A stretch of 64,000 nt of DNA from IMGVR_UViG_3300022744_000022:144487-208486, one strand, 5' to 3'; positions 1-57,787 are shown, counted from the first letter of the stretch. The notes: generated by a model not told the origin, from the sequence alone. Numbers and translations are program-made.

Positions 1-1035
1 CTGATCACTCTTGAACGAGACGCCCTCGTCACGAACATGTTCCAGGTAACCGCGAACCGTCTTCGTGAGGCTCACCGTGGGAAAGGGCGTCACGGGTCCT
101 GTGGCCTTGGAATCGGGGAAACGGTGGCGGATGCTCTCCAGCACCCGGATCAAGCGTTGCGTATCGGTGACCTCCAGGATCGCGAGCTGACCCGCAAGAA
201 GCTCACGTTTTCCCGTGACCTAAAGTTCGCCGAGTTCGGTGGACGAGGACCTTCTGTAGATCACCCCTTCAGCGATCAGCGTCTTGAATTCTACCTAGAC
301 CTCTACGCGGACTTCGCCAAACGCTATCAAATCGTGGACCGGCAGTACCTTGAGCAGCAGCTCAAGCAAGAAGGCACCGTGATCTTCGAGGGGGCTCAGG
401 GCGTCCTATTGGATCAGGACTACGGATTCCACCCGTACACAACGTGGTCCGACACGACCTTCGGCAATGCCCACGACCTGCTCCAAGGGTTCGATGGGCC
501 GGTACGTAAGATTGGCGTGCTCCGGGGCTACATGACCCGGCACGGTGCGGGACCTTTCCCGACCGAGCTACCTGACGACGTTCGATTGGACTGCGACATC
601 CAAACGGACCTGCACAACAAGTGGGGTGAATTTCAACGGCACTTCAGGGTCGGGCATTTCGATGCCGTGTTGGCCCGTTACGCCTTGGAAGTCATTGGGG
701 GTGTGGACGAGTTGGCGATCACCAACCTCGATAAGCTCGGGGCAAAGCCGCAGATCTGCCCAAGCTACCGTGACGACTTCGGTCGCAAAGTTCACCGCAT
801 CGCGCCCAAGAAGCTCGATGACTTCATGTTGGAACAAGGTGCCCACCACTGGACGCGGATCTTACCCACCTTGAAGCCCAACTACGTGACGCTGCCTGAT
901 CGAGTCAGCATCGTAGACTGCATCGCCGAAGAACTTAGAACCTCTGTGACGCTGTGCTCAGTCGGACCCAAGACCCAGCATAAGTGGCCAACCCGTTACC
1001 TCCGAGACCTACAGGCGAGCCAATGGAACTCCTGA
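1..1035 (+). CDS. Adenylosuccinate synthetase-like protein (divergent PurA family), 5' end outside window
   Basis: Motifs HGSCGLGIGET, VIFEGAQGVLLD-YG-HPYTT-S, YMTRHGAGPFPTE, RVGHFD, LAITNLD; frame is open back to base 1. Confidence 0.85.
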   Translation: MITLERDALVTNMFQVTANRLREAHRGKGRHGSCGLGIGETVADALQHPDQALRIGDLQDRELTRKKLTFSRDLKFAEFGGRGPSVDHPFSDQRLEFYLDLYADFAKRYQIVDRQYLEQQLKQEGTVIFEGAQGVLLDQDYGFHPYTTWSDTTFGNAHDLLQGFDGPVRKIGVLRGYMTRHGAGPFPTELPDDVRLDCDIQTDLHNKWGEFQRHFRVGHFDAVLARYALEVIGGVDELAITNLDKLGAKPQICPSYRDDFGRKVHRIAPKKLDDFMLEQGAHHWTRILPTLKPNYVTLPDRVSIVDCIAEELRTSVTLCSVGPKTQHKWPTRYLRDLQASQWNS

Positions 1036-5858: not shown

Positions 5859-7043
5859 TTACGCTTTGCCTCCGAACCGTGCTTTGGCTTGTTCTTCAAC
5901 TTGCGACTCCAACTCACGGGGATTCAGGGCTAACTCAGGGTTTTGCAGAAGCAGCGACCGGGCCATGGGTACAAGCGCTCCGCGATCTTGCCCCTTAAGC
6001 TGATACACCTCAAACAGACGCACCTGATCGATCTCCGGCTTCTTTAGCATCTCAAGAAAACGCTTCTCGAAGGCGGGATCATCTGCGTGGGACAACAGAA
6101 CTTCCCTGAGTCGCGCAAGCCCGTCCTGCGACAAGAATGACACAGGCGTGCGAACGGTCCACCCCAGATCCAGCAGGTCCAGTAGTAGGTGGATTTCTTG
6201 TTCGGGCAGCCCACGGCTGAGCGCTGTGGCGAACCCGGGTTCTTCCGCGAGCATTTCCTTGAGCACTTCTCCGAGCCCCAAGTCATGTAGCAGCTCTACT
6301 GAGCGGCGAGGCTGTGGCGACTCCAAGATGTCCTCGACAAGGATTTTGCGAACCGCATCCCAAGGCATCTGTTTAAGCTTGTGCGCGTTCTGCTGAATGC
6401 TCGTCCGCACATCGGGCGAGATTTTGAACCCGTACTTCGCCACGAACTTGACAGCACGAAGCATCCGGGTCGGGTCATCCGAGAACGTCTTGTCGGGGTC
6501 CACCGGCGTGGTGAGCAGGCGATCCTCAAGGTGCTGTCGGCCGTTGCCGAGAAGGTCCAGCACTTCGGCACGATCAGGTCCGTGCTCCAGGTCTAGAAGC
6601 CGCCAGAGTAGCGTGTTGAACGTGAACTCGCGACGCTGCAAGTCTTCTTGGATGGTCGCAGGTTCGACCATGTGCGGCTTGTAACCTTTGCCCGAGGGAT
6701 CGCCGTAGCTCTCTTTGCGAGCGTTGGCGATCTCCAGGACTTCACCCTTGAGATCATGCCCGTCAAGGACCCACGAGTCCGCGACGGTGAGGATCGCCAC
6801 CCCATATTGGTTAGTCGTCAAATTCGTGCGGGTCGGAATGATCCGTTGGAGCTGCTCCGCGAACCACGCAGAGTCCTTCCTACCCCCGAGAGCTACGGAA
6901 TCGACCACTACGTCCACGTCTTTAGGCGCAAGGCCCATCAAGTGGTTTCGTACTGCGCCACCGACGATGTAGACGTGTTCTCCAACGCCAAGGCGCTTGG
7001 TGGCCAAGGACAAGAAACGTAGGAGTGCCGTTATTTTTGTCAT
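5859..7043 (-). CDS. cca: Class II tRNA nucleotidyltransferase (CCA-adding/poly(A) polymerase family)
   Basis: YIVGGAVR..KDVDVV, EDLQRREFTFN, DDPTRMLRAVKF; no PAP-specific (L/I)VGRRF signature seen. Confidence 0.8.
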   Translation of the reverse strand: MTKITALLRFLSLATKRLGVGEHVYIVGGAVRNHLMGLAPKDVDVVVDSVALGGRKDSAWFAEQLQRIIPTRTNLTTNQYGVAILTVADSWVLDGHDLKGEVLEIANARKESYGDPSGKGYKPHMVEPATIQEDLQRREFTFNTLLWRLLDLEHGPDRAEVLDLLGNGRQHLEDRLLTTPVDPDKTFSDDPTRMLRAVKFVAKYGFKISPDVRTSIQQNAHKLKQMPWDAVRKILVEDILESPQPRRSVELLHDLGLGEVLKEMLAEEPGFATALSRGLPEQEIHLLLDLLDLGWTVRTPVSFLSQDGLARLREVLLSHADDPAFEKRFLEMLKKPEIDQVRLFEVYQLKGQDRGALVPMARSLLLQNPELALNPRELESQVEEQAKARFGGKA

Positions 7044-9734: not shown

Positions 9735-10712
9735 ATGCGACTCCTTTGGGCCACAGACATCCATCTGAACTTCTTGAAGGCCCCCGGAGCTGCTCAAACC
9801 TTCGGAGCGTATCTCGGGGTTGAGCAAGAGTTCGACGCTGTGGTGGTCACAGGGGACATCGCGGAAGCCCCTTCGGTCCGGGTGCTCCTGGAGAGCTTCG
9901 CTCGCGGGGTGGGTAAACCGATCTACTTCGTGCTGGGCAACCACGACTTCTACTTCGGCAGCATCGCGGGTGTCGAGAAAGAGCTGAGCGAGATTCTGTT
10001 GCCCAACCTCGTGTGGTTGGACCAGGCCCCCGATCCCATTCTGCTTGATCCTGACACGGCACTTGTTGGGCAGGGCGGGTGGTACGACGGCCTTTTGGGT
10101 GACGCTGAAAAGTCTAGGGTCTTGCTGTCGGACTTCGAGCTGATCCGAGACTTCAAGCCGCTGTTTCACGAGCAGACCTGGCTCTTTGAGTACGGGGGCC
10201 GTGCGGACCTGTTGGACAAGATCAGGACGCTGAGCAAGCAGCACGCCGGGGCAGCCAGAGCCAAGCTGCTTGAGGCCGTGAAGCTCCGCAAACACGTGAT
10301 CCTAGCCACCCACTACCCACCGTTCGCGGGGGCGTGCTGGCACGAGGGCAAAATCTCGGACCAACACTGGATGCCCTGGTTCACCTCGGGGGCCATGGGG
10401 GCGATGCTTGGGGAGGTGGCGGCAGAGCACCCGGACCATCGCTTCCTGGTTCTCTGCGGGCACACGCACAGCCCTGGGGTCTACGAGCACCTGCCCAACC
10501 TGCTTGTATTGACCGGCAAAGCGGTCTACGGGGCTCCCGATGTGGCTGGCCTACTGGAACTGCCCCTAGACCCCCTCTGGGCTAGACCTGAGCGTTGTGA
10601 TCGCTGCGACACCGCTGACTTCCGAAGCTCGGCAACGATCATGGAATGCAAGCTCTGCACCAGGGTCTGGGAGCGGGTCGGTGGGGCTTGGGTCCTTGAC
10701 CCCAAGTCATGA
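9735..10712 (+). CDS. Calcineurin-like metallophosphoesterase
   Basis: TDIH, TGDI, GNHD, THYPP, GHTH. Confidence 0.9.
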   Translation: MRLLWATDIHLNFLKAPGAAQTFGAYLGVEQEFDAVVVTGDIAEAPSVRVLLESFARGVGKPIYFVLGNHDFYFGSIAGVEKELSEILLPNLVWLDQAPDPILLDPDTALVGQGGWYDGLLGDAEKSRVLLSDFELIRDFKPLFHEQTWLFEYGGRADLLDKIRTLSKQHAGAARAKLLEAVKLRKHVILATHYPPFAGACWHEGKISDQHWMPWFTSGAMGAMLGEVAAEHPDHRFLVLCGHTHSPGVYEHLPNLLVLTGKAVYGAPDVAGLLELPLDPLWARPERCDRCDTADFRSSATIMECKLCTRVWERVGGAWVLDPKS

Positions 10713-10951
10713 GCTACCAGGCTCAGTACCGCTGCGTTCGCTGCCAGCAGCGGTTCGAGGTCACACAGGGCGTCTTCGGGTGCCCTCCGGGGCACCAAGC
10801 AGACCCTGATAGCCCGTGCGGGCGTAGCCAGCGCCAGTACCGTTGTGCGAGCTGCGCCAAAGCCCAGAGGTGCCCCCAATGCGAACACCTCTGGGTCGAG
10901 TGGCTCAACTACCAGACCCTCGTGGCAACGCATAAACTTCCTGTGCTGTAG
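10709..10951 (+). CDS. Small Zn-ribbon protein
   Basis: Multiple CxxC. Confidence 0.5.
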   Translation: MSYQAQYRCVRCQQRFEVTQGVFGCPPGHQADPDSPCGRSQRQYRCASCAKAQRCPQCEHLWVEWLNYQTLVATHKLPVL

Positions 10952-10958
10952 CCAAGGT

Positions 10959-12677
10959 ATGCTCCCCGAACGAGTGCTTCGCAGGTACCTGCGAGCGAAA
11001 AGCACCAAGAAGCGCATGGTCGTCATGATGGGCCCACCCGCAGCGGGTAAAGGCTTCTTCTTGGGCGAGCCGCCGCCGAAGTTCGGCTGGAAACTCCCCA
11101 AGATGCTCGTGGACGACAAGGGCAACCCGCTCTTGACCGAGGACGACATCCCGGAACGTCCGCACTCAGAGGAATCCGACAACCACCTGCGAGCTATCCA
11201 GTTCGAGGAAGCAAAGAAGCACTTCGACACGCTCAAGGCGGCACACGAAGAAGGTCCGGAAGCCTTCAAGAAGGCGCTCTCCGACCACTGGTACGCGACC
11301 AAGGATGGGGATCGCGTAGACCTCAGCAAGACGGTCAACTACGACGATTTCCCTGAGACCTTGAAGGACTACCACGCCAAGACGAACAAGGATTTCTACG
11401 TCTCGATGCGGGGTTGGCACGACGACGCGAAAGAAAAGAACGAGGTTACGGGTAAGCCCAAGGAGCGCTTCAAGGACGAGGCGAGGCACCGCTTCGAGGA
11501 GACGCTGCACAAGAAGATCGAAGAAATCGAGGACATGTTGATCGTGGACTCGGCAGGCGAGGACATCGACGCCCAAGACTACAAGGGCCAGATCGCTGCC
11601 GCCAAAGAGGCTGGATACGAAGTTACGGTCATCTTCCTGCATCCTGAGCAAGCCGACACCGAGCTGTCCAACCTGGCTCGCGGTAAGGTGCAGGGCAAGC
11701 GCATGGTGGACCAGTCGGATATCTCGAACTGGTACGAGAAGAACGCTGAGGCTCTCAAGGACATCCAAGAAGCAGCCCCCGACAACTTCGTGCATTACCG
11801 GAAAGGGCCGCCTGACGCGGACCCCAAGAAGGCGGCTGAGTTGCGGGCCAAGGCTCGCGACATGATGAACAAGCTCTCGGGCCTAGAGGGCGAAGAAAAA
11901 GAGAAGGCCAAGCAGGAGATCAATCAAGTCTTGTACGGGGCTGCTTCGTACAAGCTGCACAAGCCTACGTCGTACGGCTCGGCTGTGAGCGGGCTTCCTG
12001 AGAAGCCCGAGGAAAGTAGCATCGCCGACGCCGTAGAGGCCATGAACACCGAGGCTGAGAAGCGATCAGGTTCAGGCCAGCCCAAGAAGGTCAAGCCTGA
12101 GGGTGAGCAGACTCCGGAGAAGCAGACTCCGGAGAAGCAGCCTCCGGAGAAGCCCGAGGGTAAAGCCAAACCGGAGGCCGGGTCGGAGAAAACCCGGATG
12201 AACTTCCTACGGGAGCTGGGGGATCAGAAGGTCAAGAACCCCAACCCGGAGTCGCGGGATCGCTTCCCTCAAATTAAGATCAGGTCGCTACCCTGGACAT
12301 ACCAGAAGCCCTACTACGAAAAGTGGCGGGGCAAACAGGCAGCGCAACGTGTGGCAAAACGCTACCTGGAGGCAACGATGGCTGGTAAGGGATGGCTCGC
12401 AGGTTGGATGCATGAGCTTGCGGACGAGCTTGGGAAGACCAAGGTCGAGGGCTACAAAGTTTCTGCTGAGGCCGGTAAAGGTCCGCTGGTCCTGGTGACC
12501 ATCAAGGGTGCTACCGAGGACTCAACGACTGCCCGCAAGGCCAAACAATCGATCGAGAAGGTGATGGAGCACTCCATCAAGAAGCACTCAGAGGGTGTCC
12601 CCGGGTTCAAGCACCGCGTCAAGAGCTTCAACAAAGGTGCGGATCTCATACTTGAGTGCGAGGTCTTGTTTCCTTGA
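10959..12677 (+). CDS. Zeta-toxin-like/AAA_33 P-loop kinase with charged C-terminal extension
   Basis: VVMMGPPAAGKG, LIVDSAG, GYEVTVIFL, R....KRMV; start moved to ATG 10959. Confidence 0.65.
   Translation: MLPERVLRRYLRAKSTKKRMVVMMGPPAAGKGFFLGEPPPKFGWKLPKMLVDDKGNPLLTEDDIPERPHSEESDNHLRAIQFEEAKKHFDTLKAAHEEGPEAFKKALSDHWYATKDGDRVDLSKTVNYDDFPETLKDYHAKTNKDFYVSMRGWHDDAKEKNEVTGKPKERFKDEARHRFEETLHKKIEEIEDMLIVDSAGEDIDAQDYKGQIAAAKEAGYEVTVIFLHPEQADTELSNLARGKVQGKRMVDQSDISNWYEKNAEALKDIQEAAPDNFVHYRKGPPDADPKKAAELRAKARDMMNKLSGLEGEEKEKAKQEINQVLYGAASYKLHKPTSYGSAVSGLPEKPEESSIADAVEAMNTEAEKRSGSGQPKKVKPEGEQTPEKQTPEKQPPEKPEGKAKPEAGSEKTRMNFLRELGDQKVKNPNPESRDRFPQIKIRSLPWTYQKPYYEKWRGKQAAQRVAKRYLEATMAGKGWLAGWMHELADELGKTKVEGYKVSAEAGKGPLVLVTIKGATEDSTTARKAKQSIEKVMEHSIKKHSEGVPGFKHRVKSFNKGADLILECEVLFP
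12107..12152 (+). repeat. 15-bp tandem repeat x3 (QTPEK/QTPEK/QPPEK)
   Basis: cagactccggagaag cagactccggagaag cagcctccggagaag, in frame. Confidence 0.8.
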
Positions 12678-12682
12678 AATGA

Positions 12683-12712
12683 ACAGGGGCCCTGGTTGCC
12701 CAAGGCCCCTGT
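12683..12712. terminator. Hairpin between convergent genes, probable terminator
   Basis: ACAGGGGCC...GGCCCCTGT 9-bp stem; no strong U-tract. Confidence 0.5.
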
Positions 12713-12719
12713 CGCTCAC

Positions 12720-12887
12720 CTAGTTCTTGGAACGCTTACGTTCGAGCGCTACGAGGTAGCGTTCGTTGCGTTCAACGAGGCCCGGGAGCTTCTGGATTAC
12801 GGCCAGCACCACAGCAAGCTGGCCGTTCAAGGCGTGGTTGTGCTTGGCCCAAGTCTGAGCCAAACCGTTCGATTTTACCCCAGGCAT
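12720..12887 (-). CDS. Small hypothetical protein (55 aa, not in ORF track)
   Basis: MPGVKSNG...RKRSKN*, starts 3 nt after the upstream stop. Confidence 0.5.
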   Translation of the reverse strand: MPGVKSNGLAQTWAKHNHALNGQLAVVLAVIQKLPGLVERNERYLVALERKRSKN

Positions 12888-12890
12888 GGT

Positions 12891-13736
12891 TCACCCGGAA
12901 ACCGTGCAGCCGTGGGGCAAGGAAGGATCGAACATGACGCGCCGCTGGTTGATCTGCTTCCACGACCTCGGGTCCTTCGGGTCCATCAACTCCGAAATGA
13001 AGAGACGGACCGTGGTCCCCAGCGTGAGGTGGAAGGCACGGACGTAGTAGGTACGCCCGTCACCAACGTGATCGTAGCTCTCCACGACCACGCTATCGTT
13101 CTCGAACAACAAGTGATCAGGACCGAGCTTGTTGAGCGTGATGCTGCCAATAGCGCAGTTGAGGTTGGTCTTCTCGCCCGTAGCCTTGGCGGTACCCACA
13201 CTGGTGGGGATCAACATGACCGTAGGGTTAGCGACTGACCGACGAACGAAAAACGGCTTGTCCTTCGTCCACTTCGAGGCAACGTCTCGCACGTAAGCGT
13301 GCATCTCAGCACGAAGTGGGGACGGGGCGGCCGTAGGCTTTTCCGCCGCAGACGGAGGGGCCTCGTTGAGATCCAGGTCATCCAAGAACCCGAAGTCGAT
13401 CTCAGCCGCCGCTTGCTGCGTCACGTTGGGCTCAGCAGCCACCTGCGTAGTCTCTTGACGAGCAGCCGCTTGAAGCGAAAGCGCCTTGCTAAGCTGCTTG
13501 CACGCTGCGATCACTTCCGGTTTAGCGCCGGACAAGGTAAGCACCTGGTCCACCGTCTCTCGGAACTCGCTCATCCCAATCTGGGGCTTGTCGTAGTAGT
13601 GCAGGGAGTAGTCCCCGTGCATCCGGGTAATCTCCGCAGGCCAAGCATCGGGGCCCAACAGTTGAAAGTGCCGCAAATGGCTCGGCATCAGACTCTGGGC
13701 GTACTTGGACCGCGAACCCACAGGTTCTCTGGGCAT
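12891..13736 (-). CDS. Hypothetical protein
   Basis: 281-aa ORF with AGGAGAG SD. Confidence 0.7.
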   Translation of the reverse strand: MPREPVGSRSKYAQSLMPSHLRHFQLLGPDAWPAEITRMHGDYSLHYYDKPQIGMSEFRETVDQVLTLSGAKPEVIAACKQLSKALSLQAAARQETTQVAAEPNVTQQAAAEIDFGFLDDLDLNEAPPSAAEKPTAAPSPLRAEMHAYVRDVASKWTKDKPFFVRRSVANPTVMLIPTSVGTAKATGEKTNLNCAIGSITLNKLGPDHLLFENDSVVVESYDHVGDGRTYYVRAFHLTLGTTVRLFISELMDPKDPRSWKQINQRRVMFDPSLPHGCTVSG

Positions 13737-13901
13737 TGTCAGCTCTCCTTCGCGCTAGAACGCGCTTTCGTTTTCAGTTCGCTTCGTTCGCATTGGCGGG
13801 GGTTACCCCTCGCCAACAACCCCCCGTACACCAACGAAATGCGAATCTCGGACGAAAACGACCAAGCCCGTACGAATTCGGAAAGCCTTTGTACCAGCCC
13901 T

Positions 13902-14123
13902 TCAAGCCTTTAAGGTTGAAGGGAATCCGTTGACGCTGATCCGGAAAGCCGCAGTCAAGATGGCGGCTTGCACCGCCTGGGGAACCGCGATATCTAGGGC
14001 CCGCATGGCTTGGTCCAAGGCATCCCCGTAACGAAGTCCGGGGTCCTTTGAGACCAGATCAACCACCCGCTCCAGGACGGGCGCATAGCGCTGCATGTCA
14101 GCATCAGACATCGAGGTCTCCAC
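13902..14123 (-). CDS. Hypothetical protein
   Basis: 73-aa ORF; true start may be ATG 14111 (GGAG SD). Confidence 0.5.
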   Translation of the reverse strand: METSMSDADMQRYAPVLERVVDLVSKDPGLRYGDALDQAMRALDIAVPQAVQAAILTAAFRISVNGFPSTLKA

Positions 14124-14143
14124 CTTGAAAGGGTAGGGCTAGC

Positions 14144-14422
14144 ATGAAACTTACAGGACGTATCCCCGCACTCCAGACTTGCATAACCCAACAATGGACC
14201 GCTGGGCAACAGTTGGGTAGCAAGAGCTGGAAGACGCCTCGCAAATTGATGGGGTCCATCACATTCGATGCGAAGGCCGCCAAGGACTCGACTCAAGCCG
14301 TACGGGTCGTGGTTTTGAAACCTGACGGGACCATGCTGCGAGAAGAATTCCTCTATACCCTCCCTGAGGATGTCTACCCTCTCCCACTAAAGGGAACCAA
14401 TGGCATCGGCTCAATGGCGTGA
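14144..14422 (+). CDS. Hypothetical protein
   Basis: 92-aa ORF. Confidence 0.45.
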   Translation: MKLTGRIPALQTCITQQWTAGQQLGSKSWKTPRKLMGSITFDAKAAKDSTQAVRVVVLKPDGTMLREEFLYTLPEDVYPLPLKGTNGIGSMA

Positions 14423-14708
14423 AGTCCTCAAGGATAAAGTGTACGCGCTCTATGTGTACGAGCATCATCGCGTAGCGATTGCGCAACTCCTGGATCAGAA
14501 TTGGGTCGTCACACTACCCGACGATCCCACAACCAAGCATTCGGCTAAAGATCAAGAGGACGCCTTCAAAATCGGGCGTCGGATCTCGGTCGCTTGGTTG
14601 CAGGGTGCCCTCAAACAGCTCGCCCCCGAGGTTGTCCCCCGACGCGACCTAACCCCAACCGAGGCCCAGGCCGAAATCAAGCGGCGGCAGAGGCGTTCAA
14701 AAAACTAG
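14400..14708 (+). CDS. Hypothetical protein
   Basis: 102-aa ORF. Confidence 0.55.
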   Translation: MASAQWREVLKDKVYALYVYEHHRVAIAQLLDQNWVVTLPDDPTTKHSAKDQEDAFKIGRRISVAWLQGALKQLAPEVVPRRDLTPTEAQAEIKRRQRRSKN

Positions 14709-14745
14709 CGTTTCCGGCGATTTACCTGGGGCAGATCAGAGACTC

Positions 14746-14786
14746 TTGACGTTCTGCGGTCATCCGGTGTAATAGTGGACGGTGTA
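14746..14786 (+). promoter_or_regulatory. Putative promoter TTGACGTT-N12-GGTGTAAT plus a second GGTGTA
   Basis: sigma70-like TTGACG in the slot where other copies have CTAGAG. Confidence 0.6.
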
Positions 14787-14821
14787 GTAGTAACCGTTCA
14801 CCTAACTCGAAGGGACCGCCT

Positions 14822-15307
14822 GTGACCGTCAAAGCCACTCTTGCTACGAAGCTGAAAGACATCCGTGACCTCAAGTCCAAAGGGGCGGGCTTTGAGGTTC
14901 AGGCCATGTACGAGGTCCTCGCCCTGGAGAAAGCCTCGGTGTTGTGGCGTCGAGACGGTACCGAGACGTTCACCACCGTGCTCAAGGAAGAGGTCGGGGT
15001 CTGCACCCCGACACGGTTCAAGGCCTTCAAGAAGGCCGCCGAATACTTCACGCAGGACACCATCGAGAAGCTCGGTGTTCCGTGCGTGTGCCTGATCGCC
15101 ACGCAGAACCAAAGCGTCCGGCAACGGATGCTCAAGGACGCGCTCACGTACCGGAAGGATCACGGGTCTGAGCCCACCTACCAATACTTCTCGCGCTTCT
15201 TGCGCAAGCCTGGAAAGGCCGTGTCACGGACCCGGCTTCTCAAGTACGTCGAAGTGCTCAAGGCCGAGATCAAGAGCCTCGGTGGGCGCGTTCCGGTGAT
15301 GGAGTAA
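14822..15307 (+). CDS. Hypothetical basic protein
   Basis: 161-aa ORF, AAGGGA SD. Confidence 0.65.
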   Translation: MTVKATLATKLKDIRDLKSKGAGFEVQAMYEVLALEKASVLWRRDGTETFTTVLKEEVGVCTPTRFKAFKKAAEYFTQDTIEKLGVPCVCLIATQNQSVRQRMLKDALTYRKDHGSEPTYQYFSRFLRKPGKAVSRTRLLKYVEVLKAEIKSLGGRVPVME

Positions 15308-15345
15308 CCGACCCGATCTCGGGTCCCAGATGAAAGACAGATCAG

Positions 15346-15894
15346 ATGAAAAAGAGCAAGCTACGGTTCCTGTTGAGTCTGCACGAGAACATCAATCAAG
15401 GCTGCGAGATCCTCGCCGTCGATCGTGCCACCTTCATGCCGACTCTGGATCGCTTCTTCGAGACCGTCAGTCTCGGCATCGAGATGGGACTCAAGATGAA
15501 GGGCTCGAAGTCCTCACTGGCCGCCAAGAAGCCGGTGGCCGCCAAGGGGAAGGCCAAGAAGTCGGTGGCCGCCAAGGGGGAGGCCAAGGCCAAGAAGTCA
15601 GGGAAGGGCGGCAGCAGGAAGCACGACCCTCAACGAACCCTCAACGTGCTGACGGCCGTCAAGACCCACCTGGGGAAGACTTCCCCGATGCGTTTGAAGG
15701 ACATCATCGAGGCGGTCAAGCCGCTCTTGAAGGGGATCAAGGACCCGCAGCAAGCCGTCTGGAAGATGCTCACGGACTGCCCTGAGATCGAGAGCGTCCC
15801 CAAGCAGCGTGGCTTCTACCGTTTGAAGCCCTCGAAGAAGGTCTTGAACGGCAAAGCCAATGGCAAGGCGACGCACGCCGTTGCCTTGAACTAG
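15346..15894 (+). CDS. Lys/Ala-rich histone-H1-like linker + probable winged-helix DNA-binding protein
   Basis: AAKKPVAAKGKAKKSVAAKG repeats; C-terminal ...RGFYRL wing. Confidence 0.6.
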   Translation: MKKSKLRFLLSLHENINQGCEILAVDRATFMPTLDRFFETVSLGIEMGLKMKGSKSSLAAKKPVAAKGKAKKSVAAKGEAKAKKSGKGGSRKHDPQRTLNVLTAVKTHLGKTSPMRLKDIIEAVKPLLKGIKDPQQAVWKMLTDCPEIESVPKQRGFYRLKPSKKVLNGKANGKATHAVALN

Positions 15895-16970
15895 GTTCGG
15901 GACGCGAGATAGCGGCTCACCACAGCGGCGGCAGTTTTCTTGTCCTTTGCTTCCGCTCCCATGGAGTTGAGGACTTCTTGGAAGTCCTCATCGGTGAGCT
16001 GCTCGATCTCTTTGGCCACCGCTGCCATCATGAACTTGGCCATTGCGTCCTCGGCAGAGTCGCCTTTTGCGTCCTTGTCCTCGGAAGCGATGTGCTGAAT
16101 CAGGTGGGCCACGCCATGTCCAACGTGCCCCAGCTCTTCTAGCATGTGCAGGTCCCCAAGGTGTTTAGACACCGACTTCATCGCCACATGCCTAGCCAGA
16201 TTTTTGGCGAACACCCCAGCGGCCATCAACGGGCCTGACGCAGCAAACGCAGCGGCAGCTCCGCCAATCGCCATGTGGGTGGCTACTTCCTTGAAGGCGG
16301 ATTTCTGCTTCTTGGTCATCTTGCCGCCCTGCATCACGGCCTTGACGCCCTCTGCGGCAGTTTTGAACTCGTGAACCTCGTGCTTGGCGGTAGTCACGAG
16401 GTTCGTGATCATCTTCTTGGGGGCGTTCACCAGGGCGTCTTTCGCTTCACCCAACGCCTTCTTGCGGAACTCATCGTCCCCGAAGAAGTGCTTGACCGCT
16501 TTCGGGGCTGCCTCCACGAACTTCGTGGCTGACTCAGAGAGGCCTTTGAACCGGGCCTTCCAAGCGTCGAACTTGCCCGCAGGCTTGGCGGTCTCCTTGG
16601 GGGCCTCGGGAGCCTTGGCTTTGGCGGGCGGGGCCTTGGGCTGAGGCTTGGCCTCTGGCTTGGACTCAGGCTTCTTCTTGGCCTTGTCCGGGATGGGCGG
16701 CGGGGTGCTCTTAGGAGCCTTAGGCGGAGTGCTCTTGGGGCCAGCCGGGGGCGGGGGCTTGGGGGGCGTCTTACCGCCCGCTGGCGGGGGTGCTTTGGGC
16801 TTCTTGACCCCGGGCTTCTCAGCCGGGCCGCCTTTGGCCTTGTTCTCGTTGACCGAGTGCTGGGTCCTGTCGGCGTCCGGGTGTTCCTTGAGGTACTCGT
16901 TCAAGGCCTTCTCGGAGGGGAACTCCTTGGCTTGACGGTACCTGGACGCGACTCGTGCTGCTAGACCCAT
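15891..16970 (-). CDS. Pro/Lys-rich protein, possible virion-associated; RVAxRY-like motif at both ends
   Basis: 359-aa ORF; MGLAARVASRY...AAAVVSRYLAS. Confidence 0.7.
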   Translation of the reverse strand: MGLAARVASRYRQAKEFPSEKALNEYLKEHPDADRTQHSVNENKAKGGPAEKPGVKKPKAPPPAGGKTPPKPPPPAGPKSTPPKAPKSTPPPIPDKAKKKPESKPEAKPQPKAPPAKAKAPEAPKETAKPAGKFDAWKARFKGLSESATKFVEAAPKAVKHFFGDDEFRKKALGEAKDALVNAPKKMITNLVTTAKHEVHEFKTAAEGVKAVMQGGKMTKKQKSAFKEVATHMAIGGAAAAFAASGPLMAAGVFAKNLARHVAMKSVSKHLGDLHMLEELGHVGHGVAHLIQHIASEDKDAKGDSAEDAMAKFMMAAVAKEIEQLTDEDFQEVLNSMGAEAKDKKTAAAVVSRYLASRT

Positions 16971-26493: not shown

Positions 26494-26981
26494 CCACTGA
26501 CACCAAACCTCGGATCAACACCATCCACAATCTCGGGCCCATCGACCCCGTGGAGCCCGGACACACGTACGAGTTCCTGTTTGGCATGAGCACACGAGCC
26601 GGTCACGTACACGAGCGGGGCTCGCTCCTGCACGTCGAAGACCGCACCACCCGAACCCCGCATGGGGAGATCAGTGAATCCGGAAGCAACTGGGTGTGCC
26701 GAACCCAGCACGGCACGTCCGTGTGGGCTACTCTTGAGCAGTGCCTGTCCCGGGGCATGCTCAAACGCCTGAGGGACTACACGGTTTACTTCTGGAACGG
26801 GGAGCTGGGGGCAGACCCCAAGGACCGTCGGGGACGCCCTCTCGTACACAACACCGTCATGGGCTTCACAGCCGACGACCTCGAAAATCTGACGGGCCAC
26901 TACGACGTGATGATCACGACGAGCACTTGCCCGCCCGTCCTATACCTCAACAAGGTCGGTGGGAAATTCGGCCAGCGCTAG
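26490..26981 (+). CDS. Hypothetical protein
   Basis: 163-aa coupled ORF. Confidence 0.6.
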   Translation: MTTDTKPRINTIHNLGPIDPVEPGHTYEFLFGMSTRAGHVHERGSLLHVEDRTTRTPHGEISESGSNWVCRTQHGTSVWATLEQCLSRGMLKRLRDYTVYFWNGELGADPKDRRGRPLVHNTVMGFTADDLENLTGHYDVMITTSTCPPVLYLNKVGGKFGQR

Positions 26982-27460
26982 TCGTCTGCCAGATGATCCC
27001 AAAGGGTCACTGGCTTAGCAGCGGTCTCCGGCGTAGGGGTGTCTCGCCTGTAGAGACGACGCTGATACAGGGGTTGCAGATCAGGCTCAACCCGTTCCCC
27101 AAACCGGGTGAGCGCTTCGATCATCCCACGTGAGATCCTGGCATCCGAACGTATACGGATCCTGACCCTGGAGGGGTGGACTTCCACACCGTGAAATCCG
27201 ATCTCGGCGGCGAGCGCTTGGATCGTTTGAACGAGGTGCCGATCCAGATCCCGTTCACCGGCCACGTGATCCTCGACCTCAAGCCACCCTTCACGATCTC
27301 GGGAGCGTGCAGGGTTCACGATGAGCCGACGCAGGTAGCTTAGCGCCAAGACCGTGGAACGCCCTGTACGGCGGTAGTCCTCGGTCCCATCATGGAGCCA
27401 GTCCAAGGCTTCCAGAGCCCTGCGTTGAGGCGGCGTGAGCGAGAAGACGGGTGGGGGCAC
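26978..27460 (-). CDS. Hypothetical protein with C-terminal VTLWDHLADD tag
   Basis: GGTGTA 9 nt before GTG; RTGRST degenerate P-loop-like. Confidence 0.65.
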   Translation of the reverse strand: MPPPVFSLTPPQRRALEALDWLHDGTEDYRRTGRSTVLALSYLRRLIVNPARSRDREGWLEVEDHVAGERDLDRHLVQTIQALAAEIGFHGVEVHPSRVRIRIRSDARISRGMIEALTRFGERVEPDLQPLYQRRLYRRDTPTPETAAKPVTLWDHLADD

Positions 27461-30169: not shown

Positions 30170-31588
30170 ATGTCCAAGACCCTTGGGGCCCTGCGTGCCC
30201 TGTTGCGTGAGGGGTTGTCCGTCGAACAAGACGGCAACCTCGTGTGTGTTCGGCCTCTAAACCACCCTGACGGCCTCCCGGCGGAAGTGCTGCTTCCCCG
30301 GGATCACCCGCTCGAACCGAAGGCTCTCAAACAGCTCTCGGATTTCGCACAGGTGCGTCACCCGGCAGGCGGGGAGGTCCTGCAAGCGTTCGCCACCCCG
30401 GACTTCCACCCGGGATCCGTGGTGCCGATCGGGTGCGTCTTGGCCACCAGCCAAGACATCGTGATCCCCGATGCCATTGGGACCGATATCAACTGCGGAA
30501 TGCGTATGCATATTGCGGACTTGACGGTCGATCAGCTCATGGCCAAAAAGCCCGAGTGGCTCAAGGCCATGAAGGGCGACCTGTTGATGAGCACTCGGGA
30601 CCTTCCGATGTCGGTGGCTCAGATCAGGGCGATGTTCCGCACAGGACCGTTTGGGTGGCTCGAAGAAGTCGGGAAGCGGCCCTTGGGTATGCTGGGGCGC
30701 TCGGACCTCAGGCAGCTCCAGGGGGAGCTAGACCAGAGCTTCGGGCTCGGGAGCCTCGATGGGGATGACCGTTACGCCCCACAGGAAATGATGCCGGAGG
30801 ACCGGGACACCATCCGGGACTGCTTCATCGGCACCATTGGGGGCGGCAACCACTTCGTGGAACTCCAGGTTGTCGAGGAGATCTTGGACAAGGGTTGGGC
30901 GTTCCGGTGGGGGATCAGGAAGAACCAGATCGCCGTGATGGCCCACTCAGGGTCCCGTCGAGTTGGCATCATCGTGGGGCAGTCCTGGATGCAGCATGCC
31001 CGGGAGCGGTGGCCCCAAGGAGTCCCGCACCCTGAGAACGACATCTTCGCCCTGCACGGCAAGGATGCCTTGGCCTACGTGACCGCGATGAACACGGCAG
31101 CCAATTACGCGGCGGTGAACCGGCTCTTGCTTGTGGAGATGGTCCGGGACCGGCTCCGCCAGAGCTTCCCCGGGCTTGAGCTACCGCTGGTGTTCGACGC
31201 CCCGCACAACATCGTGACCCAAGAGAACGGGTTCATGATCCACCGGAAGGGCGCTACGCCTGCCCACCTGAATCAGCCGGTCCTGATCCCGGGCTCCATG
31301 GGACAACCGAGCTTCTTGATGGTCGGGCACGGCAACCAACGCTTTCTACAGTCAGCCTCGCACGGGGCGGGTCGGAAACTGTCCAGGCGAGACATGCACC
31401 GGCTCGACAAGCAAGGCCTGGACCTTGGGCTCGATGCCGTGGAGTGCATCACGCTCAAGAATGAGCGGCTCGTGCAAGAAGCGCCCGCTGCCTACAAGGA
31501 CATCGGTCCCGTGGTGCAGGTGCAGGCTGAGGCGGGGATTGCTTCGCCGGTAGCGAGGATGCGGCCGTTGCTGACGTTCAAGGGGTAA
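30170..31588 (+). CDS. rtcB: RtcB family 3'-5' RNA ligase
   Basis: PDFHPG, GTDINCG, GTIGGGNHF, HSGSR, HN, HRKGA, PGSMG, SHGAGR, EAPAAYK. Confidence 0.95.
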   Translation: MSKTLGALRALLREGLSVEQDGNLVCVRPLNHPDGLPAEVLLPRDHPLEPKALKQLSDFAQVRHPAGGEVLQAFATPDFHPGSVVPIGCVLATSQDIVIPDAIGTDINCGMRMHIADLTVDQLMAKKPEWLKAMKGDLLMSTRDLPMSVAQIRAMFRTGPFGWLEEVGKRPLGMLGRSDLRQLQGELDQSFGLGSLDGDDRYAPQEMMPEDRDTIRDCFIGTIGGGNHFVELQVVEEILDKGWAFRWGIRKNQIAVMAHSGSRRVGIIVGQSWMQHARERWPQGVPHPENDIFALHGKDALAYVTAMNTAANYAAVNRLLLVEMVRDRLRQSFPGLELPLVFDAPHNIVTQENGFMIHRKGATPAHLNQPVLIPGSMGQPSFLMVGHGNQRFLQSASHGAGRKLSRRDMHRLDKQGLDLGLDAVECITLKNERLVQEAPAAYKDIGPVVQVQAEAGIASPVARMRPLLTFKG

Positions 31589-32084: not shown

Positions 32085-34019
32085 ATGGGACTTAAAAAGT
32101 ACGTTGTTGAGAACCTGATCAGCAACACCACGGAATTTCACCTCTACATCCATGAGGCACACGCTAACGCGAGTGACAGCAACTCAGGTCTAGATCCTAA
32201 CTTCCCGTTAGCCTCCTGGGCGGCGGCAGAAGCCAAGACCCCGCTCGACACCAAAGCCCATTTGTTCTGGCACATGGGCCCCCACTCGGGAAGCGGCTAC
32301 ACCCTGACCCCGTGCCGACAGCGCATCCTACGCAACTGCAACTGGTACATCCTGGGTGACGGCGGCGGAAACGATGCACTGGCCCGTAACGTCTTGACCA
32401 GCGGCTCCGTAGCCAGTTCGGCAGACAATGCAATCTTCATCCCCGTCAGTGTTCCGGCGGCCCACGCTTGGAAGGGTAAGTCGCTGCGTTGGACCTCAGG
32501 CGCTAACTCGGGGGCCGGGTTCGATCAAGAACTGCGAACCATCACATCACAGACGGGTGGCATCATTTTGGCCAACCCGGTCGCGAATACGATCCAACCG
32601 GGCGACACCTTCGAGGTCTTCATCGGGACCACGAACCTGTTGCTGCTCGATAGTAGCGCAAACCCGCCGAGCGCCGACCTAGAACCTATATTCAACGCAA
32701 CAGGGCTCATCCCGTCTCAAGCTCCCCGAGATATCAGTGCCCCGCCAACCCCCAACTACGTTTCGCAAGACAACTCTACGGGACGTATCGTTCTAGTGAA
32801 CGTCAATTTGCTGGGCACCCTGGCGCTACCCAGCTCGCACTTCTTGGTCATCCGCGAGAGCGCTCTTGTCATGTACGGCGTCACCAACATGACAGGGCTT
32901 GGGGACGATACTGGAGGTTCGTACCAAGGCTTCTATCAAGGGGCGGACATCTTGATGGGGTACGATACGGTGCTCACTTACGTCGGAGCAACATTCTCCG
33001 CCAAAAACGGACCCTTTACAGGTTTGGCCTCAACGGACTCACAGTGGGTGGGCTGGGGACGTGGCCACGGTCACGGAAATCAAGCGGTCAGCCAAGATAC
33101 CCCTTTCCTACTGTGTCTCGGTGGAAACCACCGGGGCTTCGTATCCTCACCTTCCTTTGTCATCACCAACGGTAGATTGGGTCTCTATGGGAACTCGATC
33201 GTTGAGCCCGGAAGCATCATGGGCTTTGGGGTATCCGGTTTGGGTGGGGTGCTTGAACTCGGCCTGTTTGCCGGAGGGATTTGGGACTACACAACGATCA
33301 CTGGCGACGGCCCCTTGGCGTTGGACCTCAGCTCTGCTGTTAACGCAGGGTTTGATTTGGTGAGCAACTTATCTGGTTCCCCTGCGTTGGAGCTGGGAAG
33401 TGGGAGCCACGTCCTTTGGTTGGGAGGCGACATCACTTGTACCCCCGCCACGGCCAACACCGAAGTAGTGCGCCTCTTAGAGGGGTCGAGCTTCACCACT
33501 AGCGCCAATCTTAGCATCACCGACGGTAATGGAGCGCAAGACGTGATGACCATCGGGGGTATCACCAGGTTGACTCAAATCCCGGGCATAAATTATGCCG
33601 ATGCAGGGTGCAGGTGGACCACAGAAGTGGGTACACCTGCTGGGGGTACAATCGCGGACTACTCAGACTCCCGTACCGTCCAGACCACGGACGCCACGGT
33701 CACCACTATCCTGACCTACACAACCCGTTCAGATCTCAGCGTGATCTCAATTCACGCAACCGTCTGGGGCATCGCAACTGGAACAGGGGACGCCGCCAAG
33801 TACGTGATCGAAGCCACGTTCTACCGCGATGGGTCCAGTGTGGTAACCCAGAAAAACGTGGCCTTCCTCTCGACCTACGAATCGCAAGCCGCTTGGAACG
33901 CGAGTTTCACCATCTCGGGGCAAGACATTTGGATGCAAGTGCAAGGCGACGTTGGAACAGTCGTTGACTGGCGCTGCAAAGCCACCATCGATGAGAGCGT
34001 CGGCACGGGTGGTGCCTAA
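32085..34019 (+). CDS. Probable virion structural / tail-associated protein
   Basis: 644 aa, Gly/Ser/Thr-rich beta-type composition; C-terminal TVQTTDATVTT domain. Confidence 0.55.
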   Translation: MGLKKYVVENLISNTTEFHLYIHEAHANASDSNSGLDPNFPLASWAAAEAKTPLDTKAHLFWHMGPHSGSGYTLTPCRQRILRNCNWYILGDGGGNDALARNVLTSGSVASSADNAIFIPVSVPAAHAWKGKSLRWTSGANSGAGFDQELRTITSQTGGIILANPVANTIQPGDTFEVFIGTTNLLLLDSSANPPSADLEPIFNATGLIPSQAPRDISAPPTPNYVSQDNSTGRIVLVNVNLLGTLALPSSHFLVIRESALVMYGVTNMTGLGDDTGGSYQGFYQGADILMGYDTVLTYVGATFSAKNGPFTGLASTDSQWVGWGRGHGHGNQAVSQDTPFLLCLGGNHRGFVSSPSFVITNGRLGLYGNSIVEPGSIMGFGVSGLGGVLELGLFAGGIWDYTTITGDGPLALDLSSAVNAGFDLVSNLSGSPALELGSGSHVLWLGGDITCTPATANTEVVRLLEGSSFTTSANLSITDGNGAQDVMTIGGITRLTQIPGINYADAGCRWTTEVGTPAGGTIADYSDSRTVQTTDATVTTILTYTTRSDLSVISIHATVWGIATGTGDAAKYVIEATFYRDGSSVVTQKNVAFLSTYESQAAWNASFTISGQDIWMQVQGDVGTVVDWRCKATIDESVGTGGA

Positions 34020-34381
34020 TGCAGTAGGCGCTGGACCTCGGTGAAACGCACCGTACCCTCGTGGGTACGGTGCAGGTCCAGGATCACTTTCACGTTGGGC
34101 CGTTCGTAGATAGAAGCGAGGAACGTGGCCTCGTCTTGGATCTGCTTGATCGTCTCCCACGTAATGTTCCCCGCCTCCAGCACTTCCCTGAGCTTCTCAG
34201 CGGATGAAAAGCACGGGAGGTACAGGTCAGGGCTACCCGGCAGCTTGAGAAAAACGGGCTCTGTCCCGGCCCAAGGAAAGACAGCGCCCGTAAGTGTGAT
34301 AACACTGGGCTCTCTACCTGTGGGCTGTGGGCCATCGCCTTCGTTCACACTTGCCGCCTTCTCGTGATAGCCGTGGATCAA
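34016..34381 (-). CDS. Hypothetical protein (start uncertain)
   Basis: ORF; LYLPCFSSAEKL. Confidence 0.45.
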   Translation of the reverse strand: MIHGYHEKAASVNEGDGPQPTGREPSVITLTGAVFPWAGTEPVFLKLPGSPDLYLPCFSSAEKLREVLEAGNITWETIKQIQDEATFLASIYERPNVKVILDLHRTHEGTVRFTEVQRLLH

Positions 34382-34545
34382 AAAGTTCGCGATCGTAAGA
34401 CGCTATATCGTAAAGCCCGCTCATGGGCGCGTCACCATAAAAGCGCTGCAAGCTTCGAGGATTTCATCCGCAGCCGCTGGCCCACAGTAATCGAACGGCT
34501 TGGCGAGGTTGAGTTCCAGCACCTGATCGCCTACGTGTGGAAGCT

Positions 34546-34941
34546 CTAACGTTTGGGGAGCGCTGCAACAAGAACCCGAAGGGCCTCACGGGCCCGCTTC
34601 CCGGGCTTGAGCCCCAGCTCGGTATCCTCGAAGTCTTCGATGAACTCCCCGCAAGGACGATCTGGGAAGAACCCGATCGCCACATAGGACTCGGGATCCG
34701 CGTAGAACTGAACCGCGTGGATCAGGAGCCCTTGTTGATCCGCCACGATCGTGTGGACCAACGCTGCATCGAGCGCCCTGATTTCGCTCAACAGGCCTTT
34801 GCACAAGGTTCTGAGCCCGCTGGTCCGAACCCCTGCGGTCCTCAGCCCTAAAGCGTCCTGGAGGGCCTTGTACCGTTGATCACGCAACGCCTGAAGCACC
34901 TGAACGTGCTTCGATTGCGGACCGGCAGTCGTGTCCCCCAT
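34546..34941 (-). CDS. Hypothetical protein
   Basis: GAGG SD before ATG 34941. Confidence 0.55.
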   Translation of the reverse strand: MGDTTAGPQSKHVQVLQALRDQRYKALQDALGLRTAGVRTSGLRTLCKGLLSEIRALDAALVHTIVADQQGLLIHAVQFYADPESYVAIGFFPDRPCGEFIEDFEDTELGLKPGKRAREALRVLVAALPKR

Positions 34942-35656: not shown

Positions 35657-36202
35657 TCAGTCCCCGCTGGATCCGCCACTGCCCCCGTCGTAACCCCCAC
35701 CGCCGCTATCGTGAGACGAATAGGACGACGAATCGTGGGAGTGGCTTGGGGTGTCGTGGTGATAGGACGGTTCATGATGATGCACCGCCGGAGTATGCGG
35801 CGCAGGCTCGTAATGGTGGTGCGTCGCGACAGGGTGCTGCCGCACAGGTTCAGGGTCGTTAGAGAAGGCACTGAGGGGCACCAAATCCACCGCATCGGGC
35901 AGCGAATAGGGCAACGGATCCTCGACTGGTTGTGCCAGAGGCCGCGCCGACGAGTACAAGGGCTTTGAGGGTCTCGCCCTCTGTACACTCAAAGCTAGCG
36001 TAAGAGCTTGCGGAGTCCCCGAAGGCCGAACTGCGAAAGAGCTGCCCTGATCTTCGTCCTGATCCTCGTCCCCCTCCGCAGGATCTTCCGTGAAGGGTTG
36101 CTCAAGGTTGCGTCGGCGAGTCCGCTGATACAGCGCAAACCCGCCAAAGATTACGGTCACTAGAGTTACGAGTAGAACGACGTTTTCCATCAAGCCCCTC
36201 AA
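35657..36202 (-). CDS. Membrane-anchored protein with His/Ser/Gly-rich tail
   Basis: N-terminal TM; HHHEPSYHHD...SGGGGYDGGSGG. Confidence 0.6.
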   Translation of the reverse strand: MRGLMENVVLLVTLVTVIFGGFALYQRTRRRNLEQPFTEDPAEGDEDQDEDQGSSFAVRPSGTPQALTLALSVQRARPSKPLYSSARPLAQPVEDPLPYSLPDAVDLVPLSAFSNDPEPVRQHPVATHHHYEPAPHTPAVHHHEPSYHHDTPSHSHDSSSYSSHDSGGGGYDGGSGGSSGD

Positions 36203-36384
36203 TCAAGATCAATGTCGATATCTGAGACTGCATCCGCGACGGCTTCGATTACAGCCACCGCACCATCCGCCACAACGTCCGCCCCCAGGTCAGCGGCCAC
36301 GGAATTCTTGGACGAACGCCTGGTACTGGCGATCAAGATCCAGGTCACTACGCCAATGCCGAGAAGCCACCACACCCACGCCAT
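36199..36384 (-). CDS. Small membrane protein
   Basis: N-terminal TM, acidic tail. Confidence 0.55.
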   Translation of the reverse strand: MAWVWWLLGIGVVTWILIASTRRSSKNSVAADLGADVVADGAVAVIEAVADAVSDIDIDLD

Positions 36385-36393
36385 AGCCTAACC

Positions 36394-37083
36394 TCAACGT
36401 TGCAAGAACGGTTGCAGTGCTGCGAGGCGCTGGAACATCTCAGCCTCACGTTTCTCAATCCCATGGTAGTGCTCACGCCACTTCTTGGACAGAGCCTCAT
36501 ACAGCTCTTGGTCACGAGCATCGCCAGCCTTCCGCATCTCGGCGGACATCAAGTTGTCAGCCTCGTGCTCAGCTTTCCGCTCTACCGTCCAGTAGCGATA
36601 GAGCGCTTGAGCTTCATCGTAACGAGCCTTGTCCTCTGCGTACCAGGGCTCCGCCTTATCCTCATCGGTGAAACCCCTGAGTGCCGGATCCTTGGGCTTT
36701 TCCTGCTCGATGTAGAGCATGAGCGCTTTCCAGGATGCGAGCCACATGACAGCGGAAGGGAGCAAGTGATCGTACTCGTACGGCCACAGGTTATCCACAC
36801 CCCTCAGGTCCACCAAATGGTCCCGGTAGATCCAACGCGACTTGAACCGACGAAACCGATGCCCCGCGAAGCTGGCTTGAAGGGAGAGCCACTTCCCGAC
36901 TCGCTCAGACAGGAAGTAACGGACCGGGTACTCTCGCTTCACCCGTTCATCCCAGTCTTCCCACGTCGGACCTTCTTGGAACGGCGTCAGTCTGCGACAC
37001 CCGAGGGCGTCACAATCGGACATCCCGAGCGCTTGAGGGCCCGGGACTTCGAGCAGCTTGCGAATCTTGAGGCGAAGACTCAT
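36394..37083 (-). CDS. Hypothetical protein
   Basis: Start moved to ATG 37083 (GGTGTA 11 nt upstream), which removes the overlap with the HD gene. Confidence 0.65.
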   Translation of the reverse strand: MSLRLKIRKLLEVPGPQALGMSDCDALGCRRLTPFQEGPTWEDWDERVKREYPVRYFLSERVGKWLSLQASFAGHRFRRFKSRWIYRDHLVDLRGVDNLWPYEYDHLLPSAVMWLASWKALMLYIEQEKPKDPALRGFTDEDKAEPWYAEDKARYDEAQALYRYWTVERKAEHEADNLMSAEMRKAGDARDQELYEALSKKWREHYHGIEKREAEMFQRLAALQPFLQR

Positions 37084-39577: not shown

Positions 39578-39586
39578 CCTGGCCGC

Positions 39587-39603
39587 TACACCAAGCCGGT
39601 GTA
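39587..39603. promoter_or_regulatory. Divergent pair of GGTGTA elements
   Basis: TACACC-aagcc-GGTGTA; starts 9 nt (39577) and 10 nt (39614) away. Confidence 0.65.
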
Positions 39604-39613
39604 CTCTGCCCGG

Positions 39614-44142: not shown

Positions 44143-44151
44143 AATAGCCCC

Positions 44152-44931: not shown

Positions 44932-44933
44932 TC

Positions 44934-45878: not shown

Positions 45879-45887
45879 GAGTAAATT

Positions 45888-57779: not shown

Positions 57780-57787
57780 GGCCCTCT

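Follow-up and report, generated by a model that had tools for sequence, protein, structure and literature searches.

A conserved terminal peptide on unrelated proteins of uncultured huge phages, a candidate docking or address label

Phage T4 delivers its internal proteins IPI-III and Alt together with the DNA, and these unrelated proteins carry a short amphipathic terminal capsid-targeting peptide, an exclusively N-terminal and weakly conserved signal that lies in the precursor's first 10-20 residues, is necessary and sufficient to bring a protein into proheads, and is cleaved off by gp21, a protease cutting after L/I-x-E, on maturation. Encapsulin cargo-loading peptides and microcompartment encapsulation peptides are short terminal helices on poorly conserved linkers, which dock diverse enzymes to a shell. 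Here, we analysed a motif of about 12–20 residues with the core consensus A-x-R-V-[A/V/L]-x-R-[Y/F]-L-x-A (hereafter the RVA tag), carried by the proteins P0001 and P0002 of the 64,000-nucleotide stretch IMGVR_UViG_3300022744_000022:144487-208486 (the window) and by further proteins of the same contig and of related huge phages. The window constitutes the last 64 kb of one 208,486-bp virus record (a huge-phage fragment), 58.7% G+C, and the record is ~44% complete according to CheckV. Like the T4 capsid-targeting sequence, the tag is a short amphipathic terminal peptide common to unrelated proteins (packaging being, here, only proposed), but it is strongly conserved, is found also C-terminally and at junctions, and comes without L/I-x-E. 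With the encapsulin and microcompartment peptides it shares the tethered-helix architecture, while sequences and shells are different and a shell partner of the huge-phage tag is only hypothetical. In the literature searched, we found no description of this peptide, nor of a relevant capsid-targeting or encapsidation peptide of this kind.

A further described system concerns the enzymes rather than the peptide. Domains of polyvalent proteins, which occur in phages and conjugative elements, include zeta-like kinases and zincin peptidases, and their phage versions are predicted to be packaged into the capsid (Iyer et al. 2017, PMC5512222). The tagged proteins resemble polyvalent proteins in their HExxH zincin-like peptidases, zeta-toxin-like kinase, LPD1, ART-PolyVal and DUF5661. 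At least two effector or LPD domains per polypeptide, which define a polyvalent protein, are found in a tagged protein of 1034 aa, and P0001 consists of two modules. In the phages analysed here, however, most modules are separate genes, each with its own tag, and term searches of PMC5512222 found no mention of a shared terminal or junction peptide.

All four peptides named in the preliminary description are present in the window. MLPERVLRRYLRA begins at ATG 10959 on the + strand, AAQRVAKRYLEA occupies 12339-12374 (+) and is internal (residues 461-472 of 572), MGLAARVASRYRQA begins at 16970 on the - strand, and AAAVVSRYLAS occupies 15902-15934 (-), 5 residues upstream of the stop codon ending at 15891. 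That the motif stands at protein ends was correct for three of them, while the second P0001 copy lies at a domain junction here and is the C-terminus in some homologues. With regard to the description of both proteins as charged and Pro/Lys-rich, both do contain Pro/Lys/Glu-rich linkers.

The genome-wide regular-expression check proposed there was run and revealed clear enrichment. The strict expression R[VI][AL].R[YF] matched the six-frame translation of the window three times, in each case within the open reading frames (ORFs) of P0001 and P0002. Contig-wide (208 kb, 243-gene set), six matches were obtained against a shuffle mean of 0.42, with none of 200 shuffles reaching six, and two further matches lie in ORFs absent from the crude gene calls, giving 6-8 in total. 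A 14-column profile was then built from tag instances; seeds match it by construction, so that it serves as a catalogue and not as a test. On the contig it returned 17 sites in 11 ORFs above shuffled-decoy scores, although reversed-sequence decoys at 10.5 and 7.1 bits (n=2) fall inside the range of these scores; one of the 17, a weak new match in an overlapping frame, was set aside. The N-terminal "tag" of the contig's SprT-like protein was struck from the list, since the family alignment shows it to be the family's own core helix. After this correction, 16 sites in 10 proteins were accepted, mostly N- or C-terminal or at domain junctions. Terminal matches made up 11 of the 17 sites against 2.4 expected, or 12 if P0001 starts at ATG 10959.

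The motif recurs in relatives from IMG/VR, which provide the independent tests and are all huge phages, namely the complete genomes G001 (398 kb) and G002 (412 kb) and the fragments G003, G004 and G005. In G001, the profile found 22 sites of at least 6 bits (best decoy 5.9), of which 16 were terminal against 7.2 expected; 15 of the 22 lie within the first 30 residues, and many other copies are C-terminal or junctional. A degenerate DNA pattern for R-V-A-x-R-Y/F gave 10 matches against 1 in the control for G001, 9 against 0 for G002, 7 against 2 for G003 and 6 against 3 for G004, and most of these, read in frame, immediately follow a start codon or closely precede a stop codon. In an unbiased count of terminal tripeptides in G001, RVA was one of those over-represented N-terminally (15 versus 3.5 expected). 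The major capsid protein of G001 resembles phage G gp27 (PDB 6wkk, E 1e-63) and shares 84% identity with its counterpart in the uncultured phage LR745208.1, 48% with that in Tunturiibacter phage Tunturi_5 and 40% with that in Bacillus phage G. Copies of the tag are numerous in G000-G004, few in LR745208.1 (about 8-10) and missing from the isolate Tunturi_5; phage G, for which the DNA pattern alone was applied, displays no enrichment and probably lacks it. A tblastn search with P0001 and P0002 against 50,697 phage records gave no match. Identical P0001, P0002 and SprT-like proteins are also encoded on a 291-kb contig in a protein collection, so that a longer version of the genome exists.

These counts bear on the reading that the motif has no common function and reflects chance, composition or ordinary domain helices. 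One regular-expression match did prove to be the core helix of the SprT-like family, and zeta toxins, too, possess an N-terminal helix at the place of the P0001 tag. An excess of 15- to 20-fold over shuffles with a strong end bias, recurrence in relatives of 48-59% G+C with different codons, and linkers that vary, tags gained and lost within families and their persistence at fusion junctions all contradict this reading, which is already largely refuted and which we consider highly improbable.

Across 91 tags from three families, collected with a pattern that fixed positions +1, +2, +4 and +5 and therefore informative at the remaining positions only, the sequence reads A at -2 and R at 0 (72/91), followed by V/I, A/L/V, x, R, F/Y, L (51/91), x and A (49/91). 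At C-termini and junctions the core is often preceded by W/Y-x-x-K-[T/Q]-A. In the tag helix, two arginines spaced by one turn border a hydrophobic face made up of V, A, Y/F, L and A. In AlphaFold2 models calculated with family alignments, the tags are helical with a predicted local distance difference test (pLDDT) of 45-67, beside cores at 85-95. The prediction is that the tag does not pack against the rest of its protein, which would leave it free for a common partner. Three other kinds of signal were rejected: a Tat signal, as no twin arginine is followed by a hydrophobic region, a membrane-targeting helix, the hydrophobic face being too short and weak, and a signal at the nucleic-acid level, as codons differ between phages of 48% and 59% G+C.

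P0001 illustrates how the tag is appended. Its gene (10959..12677, +, 572 aa) encodes the N-terminal tag MLPERVLRRYLRA (10959..10997), a zeta-toxin-like P-loop kinase domain with a helical extension (about residues 18-371, 11010..12071, Walker A GPPAAGKG at residues 25-32), a Pro/Lys/Glu-rich disordered linker (residues 373-408, 12075..12182, pLDDT <50), the second, composite tag W-R-G-K-Q-A-A-Q-R-V-A-K-R-Y-L-E-A (residues 456-472, 12324..12374) and a small C-terminal alpha/beta domain (residues 479-572, 12393..12674), all on the + strand. Since more than 30 orthologues begin 3-9 residues ahead of the tag, ATG 10959 is favoured as the start over the upstream GTG 10845. The N-terminal tag is kept in 31 of the 67 family members and missing from distant ones, and the spacer between it and the first kinase strand (the Walker A strand) varies from 6 to about 30 Lys/Glu/Pro-rich residues over this family. 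The second tag, with W-x-x-K-Q-A ahead of it, is conserved across the family and constitutes the true C-terminus in P0109, P0110 and P0129, from which we conclude that the last 100 residues of P0001, missing from some homologues, are an added module; for this domain Foldseek gave weak matches to YajQ and S6-like folds. In the model (mean pLDDT 83.7, predicted template modelling score 0.78), the N-terminal tag forms a helix over residues 3-13 with pLDDT <50 at residues 8-14, and the second tag displays pLDDT <50 at 462-476 between well-folded flanks.

The kinase assignment rests on Pfam Zeta_toxin PF06414, which P0001 matches with 32.7 bits (cut-off 22.3, E 6e-8) over residues 166-273, and on Foldseek matches to PezT/zeta and AvrRxo1 at probabilities of 0.9-1.0 (0.99-1.0 for PezT and zeta) and E about 4e-3; a PDB sequence search with P0001 returned nothing. 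Zeta_toxin score, Walker A motif and best fold matches thus liken P0001 to Zeta/PezT toxins and AvrRxo1 kinases, from which it differs by its tags, its extra C-terminal domain and its position beside a metallophosphatase. Zeta toxins are further characterised by a partner antitoxin and by UDP-GlcNAc or NAD kinase activity. No epsilon/PezA-type antitoxin was recognised adjacent to P0001, and the neighbours scanned gave no antitoxin-family match.

P0002 (15891..16970, -, 359 aa) carries the tag at both ends. On the - strand, the N-terminal tag MGLAARVASRYRQA (16929..16970; helix 3-11, mean pLDDT 56 over residues 1-10) is directly followed by a mini-domain E-F-P-S-E-x-A-L-x-x-Y-L-K-x-H-P-x-A-D-x-x-x-H-x-V (16836..16928, pLDDT 91-95), a Pro/Lys-rich disordered linker (residues 46-130, 16581..16835, pLDDT about 50), an all-helical core with a Gly/Ala-rich hydrophobic helix pair (residues 133-336, 15963..16574) and the C-terminal tag D-K-K-T-A-A-A-V-V-S-R-Y-L-A-S-R-T (residues 343-359, 15894..15944; helix 345-358, pLDDT 59-67). 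By the strict pattern, the N-terminal tag is present in 20 of 61 family members, others being degenerate (e.g. RVARRA), and the C-terminal tag in 25 of 61, typically as K-T/E-A-x-x-R-V-A-x-R-F/Y-L. The core recurs inside polyvalent proteins of 1375 and 1491 aa of other phages (L009, L010) and is fused to ART-PolyVal in P0026, which carries PF18760; fusions of this family, that to ART-PolyVal included, retain tags at the junction. For the P0002 model (AlphaFold2 with family alignment, mean pLDDT 76.8), Foldseek against the PDB gave no significant match and the ESM Atlas only weak leads to virus clusters with LPD22 and LPD38. In the mini-domain, which has no Pfam family, Y26, H30, P31, A33, D34 and H38 are near-invariant in the family alignment A1. 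Its family form F-x-[S/T]-x-x-A-L-x-x-Y-L-K-x-H-P-x-A-D-x-x-K-H-x-V also occurs in an unrelated protein at locus L011.

Elsewhere on the contig, the tag is carried by three genes for HExxH proteins (contig 33255-34721, 85336-86232 and 101831-102796) and by the 1034-aa protein mentioned above (contig 102802-105906), which combines HExxH, LPD1, topoisomerase IB (Topoisom_I) and DUF5661 and displays the tandem tags RLADRF-LLIN-RVAARY between LPD1 and topoisomerase IB. The remaining carriers are the SprT-like protease, with a C-terminal tag, and proteins of 226, 959 and 94 aa without assigned function. Pfam and PHROGs assigned few or no families to most tagged proteins of G001 and the contig; most G001 carriers belong to no known family, apart from DUF5662 and an HD-domain CCA-adding enzyme. 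In the SprT-like family (n=27), real N-terminal tags (e.g. ERVLARYL) alternate with YDYDRRF in the corresponding position, distant members lack both, and the C-terminal tag is confined to this phage and its nearest relative. Junction tags are retained in the fusions P0026, P0010, P0017 and P0129 and between LPD1 and topoisomerase IB, and the tag is conserved in orthologues of 48-70% identity while linkers vary. A 511-residue reading frame of G004 (Pfam unchecked) has RVAARYK near its start, consistent with a stand-alone gene. Because the same peptide occurs on unrelated domains, linkers vary, junctions keep the tag and one family has members in which it is swapped or missing, the view that it is an appended portable module, an address or docking label and not part of the folds, is well supported. 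Of the "second address label" proposed in the preliminary description, the label therefore stands on grounds of modularity and conservation, while its destination, the capsid or prohead protease, is only circumstantial.

Two rival readings draw on the junction tags. In the first, N- and C-terminal tags would pair in trans and chain modules into a non-covalent giant polyvalent protein, with cis pairing in fusions. Many carriers have both ends tagged (the P0001 and P0002 families), and at fusion junctions a C-type tag is followed by an N-type tag (P0026 and the tandem pair of the 1034-aa protein). We nonetheless judge such pairing improbable: AlphaFold placed neither the P0001 nor the P0002 tags confidently and indicated no intramolecular pairing, N- and C-terminal tags have the same and not complementary consensus sequences, and most G001 carriers have an N-terminal tag only. 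In the second, the tag would mainly be the place where a phage peptidase (the prohead protease or the tagged HExxH peptidases) binds or cuts, marking module borders for processing without any targeting. Its position at module borders in fusions would suit this, four HExxH proteins and the SprT-like protease of the contig are themselves carriers, and peptidase processing of polyvalent proteins is proposed in PMC5512222. A cut 3-9 residues from the start or about 5 from the end would, however, free only a tiny peptide in single-domain proteins, and the residues next to the helix show no invariant scissile-bond motif. A pure cleavage site is accordingly a poor candidate, although cleavage is compatible with a docking helix and not exclusive of it.

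We propose that the motif is a portable tethered docking helix on the N-terminus, the C-terminus or both termini of unrelated enzyme modules, attached via variable flexible linkers, and that its likeliest partner would be a component of the assembling head, i.e. scaffold, capsid interior, protease or portal. The tag would thereby load polyvalent-type effectors into the virion for delivery with the DNA, in the manner of the T4 capsid-targeting sequence; among the modules so loaded would be HExxH peptidases, topoisomerase IB, the helical domain of P0002 and P0001 with its zeta-like kinase. A docking helix with the capsid as its destination is our best single guess, tentative as it is. Three circumstances favour this destination. 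Firstly, the carriers (Zeta_toxin, LPD1, Topoisom_I, DUF5661, SprT-like, HExxH and a fusion to ART-PolyVal) match domain types for which PMC5512222 predicts packaging and ejection. Secondly, five tagged genes of G001 lie in or beside its terminase-portal-protease-capsid module. Thirdly, the SprT-like tag alternates with the YDRR motif, which is concentrated in the head module.

The contig itself, 44% complete, contains no terminase, portal or capsid genes. Pfam searches of contig and relatives for terminase, gp23 and Peptidase_S77 identified no head genes (Peptidase_S77 gave nothing in G001 or G002 and a sub-threshold match only in G004), and the head genes of G001 were identified via PHROGs and a PDB sequence match. 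On the minus strand, this region starts with two small tagged genes and the putative genes for the small and large terminase, identified by sequence features alone, followed by the portal (PHROG, E 2e-31), a tagged 899-aa protein and small proteins starting with YDRR, and ends with a head maturation protease, a Gln-rich presumed scaffold, the capsid gene, more YDRR-type genes and two further RVA-tagged genes. Polyvalent proteins are characterised by linkage to virion or packaging genes (MuF, portal); the 899-aa protein directly follows the portal gene but has no MuF or other family match; a PDB sequence search with it returned nothing.

Several observations weigh against a capsid destination. 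The enrichment in structural regions expected by the preliminary description is weak: about 5 of 30 tagged genes of G001 lie in the head module, which makes up 6% of the genome, and the others are scattered over both strands, many far from head genes. Two of them stand inside a block of small genes with another terminal motif, TLWDHL, one protein bearing both, and carriers such as the G001 CCA-adding enzyme with its HD domain would also suit an ordinary cytoplasmic role. A T4-like targeting signal, as originally suggested, was not borne out with regard to a cleavage site: the T4-type cleavage motif L/I-x-E was not found after the tag, where positions +6 to +8 read L-x-A and Glu occupies +7 in 8 of 91 tags. 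No phage of this group has been cultured, and Tunturi_5, the nearest isolate by capsid protein, lacks the tag. When the G001 capsid protein was co-folded with the first 40 residues of a tagged DUF5662 protein, this one pair scored 0.00, which we list here although it is evidence neither way.

The same observations lead to the rival explanation of a docking helix for a non-virion hub, i.e. a phage or host factor (for instance a chaperonin, protease adaptor, platform for replication or repair, or subcellular compartment), with two or three tags sorting proteins intracellularly. The scatter of tagged genes over G001 on both strands is in its favour, as are the repair-type carriers (the kinase beside a metallophosphatase, the G001 CCA-adding enzyme, the SprT-like protease and topoisomerase IB), the separate C-terminal TLWDHL tag on about 30 small proteins with one G001 protein bearing both, and the GroEL-like chaperonin, clamp and clamp loader encoded by G001. 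We consider it somewhat unlikely, with no candidate hub identified, carriers that overlap strongly with polyvalent proteins thought to be packaged, and a tag that alternates with the head-module-associated YDRR motif.

The LWDxL tag, which the preliminary description had named as the other label, is real. About 30 G001 proteins, most of them small (G001 28-105 kb), have T-L-W-D-H-L 6-10 residues before their C-terminus, the tripeptide LWD being counted 31 times against 2.9 expected, and three copies lie in the window (26978-27460, -; 39572-40036, +; 47777-48115, -). The motif is absent from LR745208.1 and Tunturi_5. The G001 protein that combines both labels (36201-36884) carries an RVA-type tag N-terminally and LWDHL C-terminally. 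Thirteen G001 proteins begin with a third terminal motif, M-x(0-6)-[Y/S]-Y-D-[H/R/Y]-R (variant M-D-H-N-R-W-K-T-A). Seven of the 13 lie in the head-gene module (298-311 kb), and the motif is found outside the window at contig 105903-106160; some SprT-like homologues have it in the position of the RVA tag. Ahead of many RVA tags there is also a K-T-A or W-x-x-K-Q-A element.

Taken further, docking by terminal helices could amount to a peptide "postcode" system, in which at least three interchangeable terminal tags, RVAxR[Y/F]L at ends and junctions, M..[Y/S]YD[H/R]R or NRWKTA at N-termini and TLWDHL at the C-termini of about 30 small proteins, would distribute dozens of proteins among different addresses, for instance the interior of the virion and hubs within the cell, and RVAxRYL would replace covalent linkage for loading effectors into the capsid. 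This scheme is possible but doubtful. If the tag is a loading or sorting signal, the delivered or co-localised arsenal of uncultured huge phages could be listed from sequence only. It would further imply that polyvalent effector sets can assemble non-covalently, and would provide a compact portable peptide able to direct foreign proteins to a phage capsid or hub. The question of which of hundreds of proteins travel with the DNA would then be reduced to one peptide and one receptor, and would be testable.

Regarding expression of the tagged genes, no common promoter or ribosome-binding motif is evident upstream of them. AAGG(T) stands only 0-3 bases before several starts (e.g. ccaaggtATG), namely at window 10940-10958 and in tagged genes of G000 and G001, and upstream of those starts neither classical Shine-Dalgarno spacing nor a shared promoter box was seen.

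P0001 additionally lies in an RNA-repair-like gene set (5859-7043, -; 9735-10712, +; 10959-12677, +; 30170-31588, +), the other members being a CCA-adding/poly(A) polymerase family enzyme, a calcineurin-like phosphoesterase directly upstream of P0001 and an RtcB ligase. Because of this set, P0001 might act on nucleic-acid ends and not as a cell-wall toxin. The G001 counterpart of the CCA enzyme carries the tag.

On the contig, baseplate genes are located at 9.7-17 kb, DNA polymerase and helicases at 64-76 kb, and many auxiliary genes lie within the window. Several of the latter, at window 37-1035, 984-2219, 42307-46898 and 56646-57875, are unusual for a phage and encode an adenylosuccinate synthetase, a Ser/Thr protein kinase, an OmpA-domain protein, an ABC ATPase, a DUF4419 protein and a family 64 beta-1,3-glucanase.

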